Assembly: GCA_002269645.1 (NCBI GenBank) | Contig: NIVC01003830.1 | Coordinates: forward strand, 1-64,000 | Source: Macrostomum lignano | Taxonomy: Eukaryota | Length of the DNA: 64,000 nt | Direction: 5' to 3' | Shown: positions 28,255 to 31,233 of the stretch, piece after piece | Layout: each line of letters opens with the position of its first letter | How positions within the stretch are numbered: the stretch's first letter is position 1 | Position numbers and translations under genes: made by a program | Notes under the pieces: model-generated | What the model was told of the DNA's origin: nothing | Database searches by the model: none | Seen by the model: the letters and a program-made list of their open reading frames with translations, nothing else

Positions 28255-31233
28255 CTAGGTCCAGCCATCCGCCTGACGCTGGAGAGCGCCCGGCAGCTGA
28301 CCAGAACCTTGGTGACTTAGCGCCGCTCCTTGGAGTGTACGGGCCAGAACCCTACTCACTACTTCAGGCACTGAGTCACCAGAGCCATCAGTAGGAAGCG
28401 GCCGTTCGGCAGCACTCGGCCAGAGCGTCGTAATCACCTCTACGAGTGCTTGAACCAGGCAAGGCAGTAGCCCACTCACCAGTCCTGGGATCAGCTGTTC
28501 AAAGTTTGCACTCGGCGGCGGATTATTGTTTTGAGTCGCTTTTGGCACGGTAGATTGCGATATCGAGTCGGTCGATTCGCGCACAGGGCGCTTCCGGCTA
28601 GGGAGGGCGTGGCCGGTGAGCCAGGACGAGTCATCGTCGCCTCCTGTCGCCGCTGGCGCCCGTGCTGCGGCGTCGGCCGAACTCGGGACTGCTGCCGATG
28701 TTGGTCTCGACGCGGGGGCGGGGGGCGCTGCTGCTGCCGCTGCCGATGTTGGTCTCAGTACAGGGGCGGGGGGCGCCACTGCTGCCGCTACCGATACAGG
28801 TGCTGCTGCTGTCGCTGCTGCTGCCAATGATGGTGGAGCGGTCAACTGGCCAGTCACAGCCGCGGCTTCACGAGCGCCCGCTGCGTAGGCAGCCGCACGC
28901 CTTTGGGCCGCACTGTGGCTGTCTATCGCTACCTGGCAGTTTCTGTAATTAGCGCGGTGTGACTCGCCGCAGTTCGCGCACTTGACAGCATCTTGCCTGT
29001 CGCACTCACGCCAGTGATGCTCGGCCGCACAGATTTGACAGCGCTTGGCCGCTCTACATCGTTTGGCGTGATGCCCGAACCTCTGGCATTTTTGGCATTG
29101 TGGAGCCCGGGCGGGAGTCGCCGTTCTGCTTGGCTCGCATTGGTACGTGATGAAGTCTGTGATGATGCCTGTTGCCAAACAGGCGTCCACGGTCTGCTTG
29201 TTTTGGACAAAGACTCGCATCAGGTATGTGGGTTGATTTTTGCTTTTGGCAATAATGCGGCTAGCCGAGATGATTTTTAGGCCCGCACTGTCTTTCAGGT
29301 GGCGCTTGAAATCTTCAGCACTGACGTTGAGCGGCACACCGCGCACGACAAAGGAGTGGATCTCCTGGGTCATCGGTCGCTGCGGTGCAGTCCGCCTCGC
29401 TTGTTGGTCAGGCCTAGCTTTTGGAAGCCTCCTAGTAACCGGACCCCCGACAAACTGGGGCTCGCGCAGGGACCCACGCAGGAAAACTTGATGGTCCCGT
29501 GGCGTGGCCGGAAAAACCAGGAAGCCAAATTCGTGCGCTAATGATTTGGTAAGTGTGGCTCGGGCCGACCCTTGAAAGTTGGCCGCGAGCCACTTGAGAA
29601 ATTCTAATTGGCTGGCTTCAGCTGTTGTGTTGAAAACCACTGGCACCACATTACTGCTATTAGGTTGTCGTGGTCTTTGCTGATTTGCCGCCATGTCCGC
29701 ATAGGAGCGACGGTTGCCACCCCGCCCCGCACCGCCGGCGCTGCCGCCGCCGTTGCCCTGGGCTCGTGGGCCGCCTGGGACCGCAGAGCCAGACGCGCCG
29801 GCTGCTCCGCAGTCTCCTGGTTGCCCGTTGGTCACAGCTGTCCGGGAGCCCGGCGCAGCCAGGCTGGTGCCCGCCCGGCCACTGCCAGGCCCATCTTTGC
29901 CGCTTTGGTCTTGGTCTCTGTTGCGGGGTCTGCCAAGCGCAGCAGGGCCGGGCGCGCCGGCCGCCCCGCTGCTGCCTGGTTGCCCGGTCGCCGCGCTCGT
30001 CCGGGAGCCCGGCGTGGCAGGACCGGAGTCCGCCCCGCCTCTGCCGGGCCCATCTCCGACGTATGCAGCTGCTGCAGTTGGGCCTCCGCGCCCCGGTGCG
30101 GCTGTGCGAGGAGGTTCCGTCACTCGAAAGGTGAGTGATATCCTGACACCCTCCTGCATGCCCACAGCCGGGACGCTGTGCTGGCATCGTCGCTGGCATC
30201 CGCCGGCCATTATTATTAGTGAGCCAGGCTCTGTACGAAACCGCCCGATGATTTTTTGATCGCTGTTTTGACGGACCAAGAATGTTCTTACCGCACCAAG
30301 CGACACCGTAGCTATGTATGGGTCCCTGCCTAGCTCGGGTTCATTGTCCGCGTGATACGGGATCTGGTCGTCAGCGCTTTCATAAAAGTTAATTAGGCAC
30401 GAATTAAACCTCGGCATTCCAATATCAGCGTTGATCTCTAGGAAATCCCTTAAGTCTTCAACTGCCGGGTGCCATTTTAGATTCTGTTGTAGTGCAACGC
30501 CTGAGTATGAGTACTGAGGCCCGTACCACACAACCTTACGTTGCTCTTGTGGCCGGTGCCTGATCGCCTTTGGTAGTAGGTCGGTGATGAGGCAGTCGTA
30601 CAATTGTTGGGAAACAGATTCAAGCATTTGCGGATAGTACTCAAGGATGACGTCGCCAAACCGTTGGATTTTTTCGCCAGTTCGATCAGGATGAACTGGA
30701 AAGCCGATGGGCGCACGCAGGTAGTGTGCGGTGTCCGCCTCATCTTCATTGTCCGTGGCATCGCGACTGCTTGAGCTGCTTGAGATGTTGGCTGTTTCGG
30801 TAGGCACCTGCTCCTGAGTCTCTGTACCTGGGTCACTGTCCACCTGGGCCAGTTCTTCCTGTACAGTTGCGGAGCTACTGGTCGCCGAGTTATCTGAGTC
30901 ACTAGCTACCACAATGACCTCGCACTGCTCGGTCAGTGCCGGGTTAGAGAGTACTGGTGATGCAGTAGCTGAAGAGTGATCAGAGCCCGGCGTCAGCGTA
31001 CTTGGCGCTAGTGGCGGAGTAGTCTTACTCGGCATGCCAGCTGATGATCGCCTTTTTTGAGTTGGAGGCACTGAGGTGCGACTAGTAGTACCTTTGCTGC
31101 TGGGAACAGCCGAAGCTGCGCCAGTAGTCTGGTAACTTGCTGGGGCCCAGTCCGAGGACTGCCGAGTGTTGGCCTTCTTGGTTGGCGGTTCAACCGCGCT
31201 CACCGATTTTTGATAGGTGGGAAGTTTGGACAT
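28255..31233 (-). CDS. ORF1 (992 aa): AlkB-family 2OG-Fe(II) dioxygenase domain, Gly/Ala/Pro-rich linker and three gag-like CCHC knuckles
   Basis: AlkB core at about 30124-30540: FNSCLINFY, YHADNE (HxD), IATVSLGAVRTF, GSLIIM, QHSVP (H), RISLTFR (RxxxxxR). Knuckles at about 28936-29097: CQKCQRFGHHAKRC, CQICAAEHHWREC, CANCGESHRANYRNC. Confidence 0.93.
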   Translation of the reverse strand: MSKLPTYQKSVSAVEPPTKKANTRQSSDWAPASYQTTGAASAVPSSKGTTSRTSVPPTQKRRSSAGMPSKTTPPLAPSTLTPGSDHSSATASPVLSNPALTEQCEVIVVASDSDNSATSSSATVQEELAQVDSDPGTETQEQVPTETANISSSSSSRDATDNEDEADTAHYLRAPIGFPVHPDRTGEKIQRFGDVILEYYPQMLESVSQQLYDCLITDLLPKAIRHRPQEQRKVVWYGPQYSYSGVALQQNLKWHPAVEDLRDFLEINADIGMPRFNSCLINFYESADDQIPYHADNEPELGRDPYIATVSLGAVRTFLVRQNSDQKIIGRFRTEPGSLIIMAGGCQRRCQHSVPAVGMQEGVRISLTFRVTEPPRTAAPGRGGPTAAAAYVGDGPGRGGADSGPATPGSRTSAATGQPGSSGAAGAPGPAALGRPRNRDQDQSGKDGPGSGRAGTSLAAPGSRTAVTNGQPGDCGAAGASGSAVPGGPRAQGNGGGSAGGAGRGGNRRSYADMAANQQRPRQPNSSNVVPVVFNTTAEASQLEFLKWLAANFQGSARATLTKSLAHEFGFLVFPATPRDHQVFLRGSLREPQFVGGPVTRRLPKARPDQQARRTAPQRPMTQEIHSFVVRGVPLNVSAEDFKRHLKDSAGLKIISASRIIAKSKNQPTYLMRVFVQNKQTVDACLATGIITDFITYQCEPSRTATPARAPQCQKCQRFGHHAKRCRAAKRCQICAAEHHWRECDRQDAVKCANCGESHRANYRNCQVAIDSHSAAQRRAAAYAAGAREAAAVTGQLTAPPSLAAAATAAAPVSVAAAVAPPAPVLRPTSAAAAAAPPAPASRPTSAAVPSSADAAARAPAATGGDDDSSWLTGHALPSRKRPVRESTDSISQSTVPKATQNNNPPPSANFEQLIPGLVSGLLPCLVQALVEVITTLWPSAAERPLPTDGSGDSVPEVVSRVLARTLQGAALSHQGSGQLPGALQRQADGWT

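Follow-up and report, generated by a model that had tools for sequence, protein, structure and literature searches.

A predicted ALKBH3-like dioxygenase domain within the ORF1 protein of a LINE inserted in a spliced-leader exon of Macrostomum lignano

In single-stranded RNA and DNA, N1-methyladenine (m1A) and N3-methylcytosine (m3C) are demethylated oxidatively by ALKBH3 and by AlkB domains from plant RNA viruses. Both adducts lie on the Watson-Crick face, block pairing and stall reverse transcriptases. The proteins encoded by the first open reading frame (ORF1) of long interspersed nuclear elements (LINEs) bind their own transcript in cis. To our knowledge, LINE proteins carry very few enzymatic activities beyond the core of endonuclease and reverse transcriptase (RT), and the SGNH esterase of some ORF1 proteins (ORF1p) is the main example. 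The families CRE, SLACS, CZAR and NeSL use a restriction-like endonuclease (RLE) located C-terminal to the RT. NeSL has been named as specific for the spliced leader (SL), and target-specific lineages have been described for both the RLE type and the type with an apurinic/apyrimidinic endonuclease (APE), the site-specific APE elements being placed so far in the Tx1 and R1 clades (PMC4640811). Here we describe a stretch of 64,000 nucleotides from Macrostomum lignano (assembly GCA_002269645.1, contig NIVC01003830.1, positions 1 to 64,000), referred to as the window. It contains an intact APE-type LINE that is inserted site-specifically in an SL exon, and the ORF1 of this element encodes a predicted AlkB domain. 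The features on which this finding depends are the following.

28255..31233, minus strand: ORF1, 992 amino acids (translation, Pfam)
30118..30672, minus strand: AlkB domain, an ALKBH3-like Fe(II)/2-oxoglutarate dioxygenase by prediction, ORF1 residues ~188-372 (Pfam, phmmer, AlphaFold2, Foldseek)
28936..29097, minus strand: three CCHC zinc knuckles, ORF1 residues 713-726, 732-744 and 752-766 (regular expression on the translation)

An earlier note on this DNA, made from the letters alone, had proposed at 30124-30660 an AlkB-family dioxygenase, complete in its catalytic residues and fused in frame to the gag knuckles of a LINE ORF1, and had named a profile search beforehand as a check. The search bears the proposal out: Pfam PF13532 (2OG-FeII_Oxy_2) matches ORF1 residues 230-370 with an E-value of 8.9e-25 and a score of 88.5 bits (cut-off 31.2). 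The bounds given by the AlphaFold2 model, 30118-30672, reach slightly beyond those first read, and the domain shares one 992-amino-acid frame with the three knuckles. The motifs that the note had listed are all in place in the minus-strand frame of ORF1, far beyond chance: HAD at 30346-30354 provides H294 and D296, QHSVP at 30169-30183 provides H352, RISLTFR at 30124-30144 provides R364 and R370, NSCLINFY lies at 30382-30405 and VSLGAVRTF at 30280-30306. The Fe(II) triad HxD...H (H294, D296, H352) aligns with the matching columns of ALKBH3. The 2-oxoglutarate contacts are also complete, with R364 and R370 from the RxxxxxR motif of the last strand and N277 and Y284 from the NSxLxNxY strand. All of these residues (N277, Y284, H294, D296, H352, R364 and R370) are invariant in alignments of 12, 13 and 57 sequences, which comprised bacterial, algal and animal homologues together with all element-borne homologues.

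When the domain was compared with the PDB by phmmer, human ALKBH3 (E 1.4e-25) and ALKBH2 (E ~1e-11) were the only families matched by sequence. An AlphaFold2 model of residues 172-381, built from the 57-sequence alignment, reached a predicted local distance difference test score (pLDDT) of 92.3 and a predicted TM-score (pTM) of 0.89; the modelled structure contains both the double-stranded beta-helix and the N-terminal nucleotide-recognition extension. Foldseek placed human ALKBH3 first (E 2.5e-16, TM-score ~0.8 over ~200 columns) and ALKBH2 next, while ALKBH6, E. coli AlkB and others followed at least six orders of magnitude behind ALKBH3 and ALKBH2. The resemblance to ALKBH2, ALKBH3 and viral AlkB domains that had been noticed earlier was thus recovered by phmmer and Foldseek. 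Together, these sequence and fold features assign the domain to the ALKBH2/3 branch of the AlkB family. It is almost certainly a catalytically competent module and an integral part of the element.

The assignment to this branch also bears on a different possible substrate. The domain could be an eraser of N6-methyladenosine (m6A) that acts on the element transcript or on host RNAs and thereby escapes decay or silencing mediated by m6A readers. An AlkB protein of an orchid retrotransposon is an m6A demethylase in vitro, and its authors argue for an epitranscriptomic surveillance of transposable elements (PMC9289625). L1 is likewise reported to be modulated by m6A writers and erasers (PMC7873242). 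However, the orchid protein is ALKBH5-like, whereas the window domain matches by sequence only ALKBH3 and ALKBH2, and the PDB sequence search returned no chain of the ALKBH5, FTO or ALKBH9/10 type at E<=0.01. In the fold search ALKBH3 and then ALKBH2 rank well ahead, and neither ALKBH5 nor FTO appears in the top 50. In addition, PMC7873242 reports that m6A promotes rather than restricts the retrotransposition of mammalian L1, so that a benefit of erasure is not obvious. We regard an m6A eraser as unlikely.

The AlkB segment was then used in an exhaustive HMMER scan of 1.84 billion representative proteins, which gave 6,888 matches. The highest scores belong to long ORF1-like proteins with AlkB in their N-terminal half; free-standing AlkB or ALKBH3 proteins almost all rank lower, the exception being a short metagenomic AlkB (P0003, 111.0 bits) that scores about the same as the lowest long protein (P0129, 111.8 bits). 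In all five loci with DNA context (L001, L002, L005, L006 and L007), an AlkB-bearing ORF1 is followed by an ORF2 with APE and RT. L001 comes from the same M. lignano assembly (GCA_002269645.1) and is present there in tandem copies; L002 has an ORF1 of 843 and an ORF2 of 948 amino acids. The same architecture is found in the M. lignano UniRef proteins P0123, P0126, P0127 and P0271 and in the Logan protein P0129, which are known as protein sequences only, and independent assemblies (NCBI and several Logan runs) agree on it. AlkB is present in every related element recovered. Compared with the window element, identities of 61, 57, 39 and 38% were obtained for ORF2 and of 54, 64, 37 and 44% for AlkB across these relatives. 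Whichever pair is compared, AlkB is conserved better than any other ORF1 segment; it is 66% identical to that of L005 and 46% to that of L006, against 45% and 33%, respectively, for the region of the RNA-recognition motifs (RRMs) and knuckles. Since the order AlkB-RRM-CCHC is kept across ORF2s that are only 38-61% identical, the arrangement predates a deep radiation of the LINE clade. In a neighbour-joining tree (184 columns, 100 bootstraps), the element AlkBs form one clade (99%) to which neither animal ALKBH3 (93%) nor the next-best matches, bacterial and algal groups, belong.

Two outcomes that the earlier note had set against its own proposal were absence of the domain from other copies and neutral evolution. 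The data point the other way on both: AlkB recurs in the five loci and the further ORF1 proteins, and constraint on ORF1 is strongest there. The AlkB phylogeny it had called for gave a mixed answer, in that a separate element clade emerged and no donor lineage was singled out. These comparisons also decide about AlkB as a passenger without a role for the element, whether a host exon picked up recently by transduction, a chimera of the assembly or a pseudo-domain in decay. Transduction of host sequence by LINEs does occur, and an exact-sequence look-up found no identical ORF1 or ORF2 on record. But at least six lineages of elements, with up to 62% difference between their ORF2s, have ORF1s with an N-terminal AlkB and RRM/CCHC modules, the catalytic residues do not vary, AlkB evolves more slowly than any other ORF1 segment, the element AlkBs are set apart from animal ALKBH3, and the architecture appears in independent assemblies. 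Host-exon capture, assembly chimera and neutral passenger are ruled out by the comparative data across lineages, and we leave them hardly any probability. As judged from the sequences compared here, the whole element clade inherited AlkB vertically as an old module and has maintained it under selection.

Other searches were less productive. With the whole ORF1 as query, 8000 candidates were returned and none was significant, low-complexity words being dominant; only the AlkB segment by itself gave matches. The ORF2 homologue search yielded two close relatives only and no named protein, and Rfam gave no match on the related loci. Some features of the relatives deserve mention in their own right. 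In L001, 9700-21146 consists of head-to-tail tandem copies with a period of ~6.45 kb and the junction AAAGATTTCCGTGGAGGGATAC, and both ORF1s are frameshifted; the junction starts with AAAGA, as does the SL target. The branch of L002 and P0129 has a conserved ORF of 123-124 amino acids between AlkB-ORF1 and ORF2 (L002 4346-4717; L012 3269-3643; L013 3177-3551), for which no Pfam match was found.

The remainder of ORF1 contains nucleic-acid-binding modules, in addition to the knuckles listed above.

29659..30117, minus strand: low-complexity linker rich in Gly, Pro, Arg and Ala, ORF1 residues 373-525 (translation)
29131..29640, minus strand: two RRM-like beta-alpha-beta-beta-alpha-beta folds, ORF1 residues 532-602 and 626-701 (AlphaFold2, Foldseek)

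In one frame, ORF1 thus runs from a disordered N-terminus through AlkB, a G/P/R-rich linker, two RRM-like folds and three CCHC knuckles to an Ala/Pro-rich C-terminus. Within the linker, which is the most divergent ORF1 segment among the relatives, a stretch of 115 nt is imperfectly duplicated at a spacing of 159 nt. The RRM-like modules have block pLDDT values of ~85-90 each in the AlphaFold2 model, their Foldseek matches are the tandem-RRM proteins NONO, HuR, Sxl and PABP, and the alignment shows this region to be conserved in all relatives. The Cys and His columns of the knuckles are conserved in the same alignment, and Pfam zf-CCHC detects the relatives weakly. By model and motif, the product is an ORF1p of the RRM plus CCHC kind ('type II').

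AlkB ORFs were also found beside retroelements of another class. In L010 (Logan SRR19430222, 2120-7398), an AlkB ORF of 1,012 amino acids lies directly upstream of an ORF with an RT and a C-terminal GIY-YIG domain. In L004 (JGI metagenome 3300055003, 3-7148), an AlkB ORF of 883 amino acids is flanked by the GIY-YIG end of one RT ORF and the beginning of the following one; this AlkB ORF (P0162) has in addition a weak, sub-threshold GDSL-like match (18.5 bits, cut-off 32.9). The RT ORFs of the two loci are 45% identical (E 1e-131), and their GIY-YIG parts match too. Judged by domain order, both are Penelope-like elements (PLEs) with an AlkB-bearing upstream ORF. In the neighbour-joining tree, the L010 AlkB falls within the LINE AlkB clade and the L004 AlkB outside it, which suggests that element classes have exchanged AlkB and also captured it independently. 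Rotifer retroelements share GDSL and DEDDy modules (PMC5408684), and the AlkB pattern of LINEs and PLEs echoes such sharing.

The element itself and its insertion site are resolved as follows.

24750..32766, minus strand: full-length non-LTR (long terminal repeat) retrotransposon, 8017 bp, made up of 5' untranslated region (5'UTR), ORF1, ORF2 and 3'UTR (megablast against the reference ribosomal DNA (rDNA) unit)
32767..32780, minus strand: target-site duplication (TSD), upstream copy, 14 bp, AAAGACGGTCTCTT (junction read)
32784..32767, minus strand: 5' part of the SL exon, CCGTAAAGACGGTCTCTT, containing the upstream TSD copy (junction read)
24736..24749, minus strand: TSD, downstream copy, AAAGACGGTCTCTT, with the remaining SL exon (24710..24735) and the GTAAGA donor next to it
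31234..32766, minus strand: 5'UTR, AT-rich, 1.5 kb, without a long ORF (ORF list, junction read)
25364..28237, minus strand: ORF2, 957 amino acids, beginning 17 nt past the ORF1 stop (translation, Pfam)
27524-28171, minus strand: APE-type endonuclease of ORF2, residues ~23-238 (Pfam Exo_endo_phos_2, 1e-11, at residues 120-238)
25874-26638, minus strand: RT of ORF2, residues 534-788 (Pfam RVT_1, 1.4e-34)
24750..25363, minus strand: 3'UTR, 0.6 kb, with terminal stem-loop CGGCAGAGCCC...GGGCTGATCCG and tail CGTTTAACAACAAC (junction read, comparison)

The 8,017-bp insertion maps to position 13475-13488 of the reference unit, and the other rDNA units of the window lack the element. The SL exon is 44 nt long, CCGTAAAGACGGTCTCTTACTGCGAAGACTCAATTTATTGCATG, followed by a GTAAGA splice donor, and is identical letter by letter to the published M. 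lignano SL consensus (PMC5173321). The TSD corresponds to nucleotides 5-18 of this exon, and the element has the orientation of the SL gene. The insertion bears the hallmarks of target-primed reverse transcription, namely the 14-bp TSD and the tail, and three SL genes of the window are uninterrupted. The RT of ORF2 matches the R2 and L1 ORF2p structures in the PDB; ORF2 shows neither an RNase H nor a C-terminal Cys motif, and its C-terminus carries no PD-(D/E)xK motif of a restriction-like endonuclease. Transcription of the element could begin at the SL RNA gene promoter, just upstream of the 5'UTR.

The site raised the question whether AlkB and SL targeting belong together, a combination that the earlier note had singled out. 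They do not: the SL sequence is absent from all related loci, the L001 copies carry AlkB and sit in another sequence, and AlkB ORFs also accompany Penelope-like elements; a tie between AlkB and SL targeting was thus rejected. The same observations bear on a further alternative, in which AlkB acts on target DNA or chromatin, or on host small RNAs such as SL RNA and tRNAs, and not on the nucleic acids of the element. It could, for example, clear alkylation at a single-stranded target or remodel host RNA pools in favour of the element. ALKBH3 does act on both single-stranded DNA and RNA, solved complexes with single-stranded DNA top the fold search, and the element resides in a heavily transcribed locus of small RNAs and rDNA. 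Yet AlkB is kept in the non-SL relative L001 and also in Penelope-like elements, whose integration chemistry differs, so a function specific to one target site is unlikely; moreover, the fusion to RRM and CCHC modules points to the RNA of the ribonucleoprotein. We consider an action on target or host nucleic acids quite improbable.

Our overall explanation, to which we assign a probability of roughly 0.6, is that an intact APE-type LINE in the SL exon makes an RNA-binding ORF1p whose ALKBH3-like dioxygenase serves the RNA or cDNA of the element. By analogy with the family, the role of AlkB would be a repair or de-marking of the m1A/m3C type on the element's own nucleic acids, for which we see the odds as about even. 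The ORF1p would bind the element's RNA in cis and thereby tether AlkB to the 8-kb template, from which AlkB would oxidatively strip N1-methyladenine and N3-methylcytosine. It might in addition work on single-stranded target or cDNA exposed in target-primed reverse transcription. Removal of these lesions or marks would result in fewer abortive, 5'-truncated copies and in more full-length copies of 8 kb.

Several points weigh against this explanation. We infer substrate and benefit from family resemblance alone. Compared with aligned cellular homologues, mostly metagenomic and bacterial, the element AlkBs (that of the window and that of P0001) are missing roughly six residues from the W-x-Q...G-[RK]-x4-PR segment; the shortened segment lies at 30540-30600 (ORF1 residues ~212-232), before the (R/K)xxxWYG strand (RKVVWYG), and the loss could change the choice or handling of the substrate. 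No close copies of the window family (above 90% identical) were recovered that would show recent activity or constraint within the family. The AlkB tree is a neighbour-joining tree on 184 columns and picks out no donor. Finally, the synonymous divergence (dS) is saturated or undefined in all pairs, which makes the ratio of the nonsynonymous divergence (dN) to it only qualitative and leaves relative dN and identity usable: in L006/L007, the closest pair with DNA, dN is 0.26 for AlkB, 0.28 for RRM-CCHC and 0.54 for the linker, with dS of 1.6-2.1. From the sequences, purifying selection on AlkB is clear and omega is imprecise.

A wider hypothesis, which we put forward as tentative and rather doubtful, is that AlkB represents a mobile accessory module of animal retroelements that has so far gone unrecognised. 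An ancestor of the LINE clade would have acquired it a single time, Penelope-like elements would have received it by exchange or captured it independently, and it would be kept because methylation of retroelement RNA bases (m1A and m3C), whether caused by the host or by damage, hinders reverse transcription. If true, this would amount to an epitranscriptomic arms race between retroelements and hosts, like that proposed for plant RNA viruses. An ALKBH3-type demethylase in ORF1p, kept across a deep clade and also beside Penelope-like RTs, would constitute a second enzymatic class of ORF1p. The finding further suggests that retrotransposition is limited by methylated bases in the RNA template, an idea that is experimentally addressable. 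M. lignano is a model in which transgenesis is possible. For tool building, the domain could also serve as a compact, naturally RNA-tethered demethylase.

The surroundings of the element consist of a head-to-tail rDNA array on the minus strand, with 18S, 5.8S and 28S in each unit and a U1 small nuclear RNA (snRNA) gene in the spacer (Rfam). Megablast of the unit 4670-15929 against the window gives a repeat unit of 11,260 bp. An SL RNA gene is likewise present in each spacer, one per unit and five in the window, two of which are interrupted.

2067-2092, 13449-13474, 24710-24735, 42423-42448 and 58228-58253, orientation as the rRNAs: SL exon copies
13449..13492, minus strand: uninterrupted SL exon, an example of an empty target site (sequence read-out)
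2591-2753 and four more sites, orientation as the rRNAs: U1 snRNA gene
42463..43736, minus strand: second insertion, ~1.27 kb, without a long ORF, at the identical SL-exon nucleotide in the next-but-one rDNA unit (megablast)

Two independent inserts therefore occupy one identical nucleotide of the 44-nt SL exon. The body of the second insert is unrelated to the AlkB LINE, and the two have the 3' stem-loop CGGCAGAGCCC...GGGCTGATCCG and the tail CGTTTAACAACAAC in common. With no DNA similarity to the body, the 1.27-kb insert was rejected as a 5'-truncated copy of the AlkB element. The 3' stem recurs, with two compensatory pairs, in L001, a related M. lignano family, and fits a 3'-end RNA signal recognised by the ORF2 of such elements. 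The second insert is probably a non-autonomous or 5'-truncated relative that was mobilised by the same kind of ORF2.

The array has other peculiarities. The linkage of rRNA, U1 and SL RNA genes in one repeat is an unusual combination of three RNA gene types. One rDNA unit lacks ~1.6 kb, from the 3' part of 18S to the start of the spacer (reference 9491 joined to 11074), and retains of its 18S the fragment 40048-40244 only. One 18S rRNA gene is split by a 3.2-kb insertion (51756-54997, minus strand) into halves of the small-subunit gene at 51090-51830 and 54971-56145. Inspected by eye, this insertion contains an ORF of 965 amino acids (55079..52182) with a C2H2 zinc finger, an RT-like region and a C-terminal CCHC, and next to it, in another frame, an ORF of 151 amino acids (52302..51847) with a PD...D/ExK-like motif. 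It looks like an R2/R8-type element with a restriction-like endonuclease and a frameshift before the nuclease.

A full-text literature search, the scope of which left Repbase reports and subscription journals outside, returned no description of AlkB in LINEs or Penelope-like elements. The word AlkB is absent from PMC3905857, PMC4120745 and PMC5203782, which are papers on ORF1 and LINEs, from a giant-transposon review and from a 2021 survey of Penelope-like elements. Provisionally, we regard AlkB in these two classes as undescribed, with plant and invertebrate RNA viruses and one orchid Ty3/Gypsy lineage as the known precedents.

Compared with known systems, the window domain is closest to human ALKBH3 and ALKBH2, its best matches in both sequence and fold, with identical triad, RxxxxxR and NSxLxNxY contacts. 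ALKBH3, however, is a free-standing cellular repair enzyme, whereas the window domain is a module of a 992-amino-acid ORF1p, ~30-40% identical and in a separate clade. The AlkB domains in the replicase polyproteins of Closteroviridae, Betaflexiviridae and invertebrate RNA viruses have similar folds and are likewise embedded in a multi-domain protein of an element with an RNA genome or intermediate, and the role proposed for them, repair of their own RNA, is the same kind of idea as that proposed here. By contrast, their carriers are replicons with an RNA-dependent RNA polymerase, while the window AlkB is fused to the RNA chaperone (ORF1p) of a reverse-transcribing LINE and not to its polymerase; in Foldseek, the RNA-virus matches rank below giant-virus and cellular-type AlkBs. 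The Ty3/Gypsy element of the orchid Phalaenopsis has also fixed an AlkB-family 2-oxoglutarate dioxygenase, for which RNA binding and demethylase activity were demonstrated by experiment (PMC9289625). That AlkB is ALKBH5-like (m6A), forms a separate extra ORF of a plant LTR element and is described as recently acquired in one lineage (PMC9289625), whereas the window element is an animal non-LTR element whose ALKBH3-like domain lies in frame within ORF1 and is ancient in its clade.

In the SGNH/GDSL esterase ORF1 of CR1/L2-like elements, an enzyme domain likewise stands beside nucleic-acid-binding modules (PMC3905857, PMC4120745); the esterase hydrolyses esters, whereas the window ORF1 is predicted to demethylate nucleic acids oxidatively. 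As for the insertion site, CRE1/2, SLACS, CZAR and NeSL-1 are likewise site-specific in the SL exon of tandem SL RNA genes and take the orientation of the gene. Unlike these, the window element has an N-terminal APE endonuclease and no C-terminal restriction-like endonuclease, and it is not a member of the SL-specific CRE, SLACS, CZAR and NeSL families.

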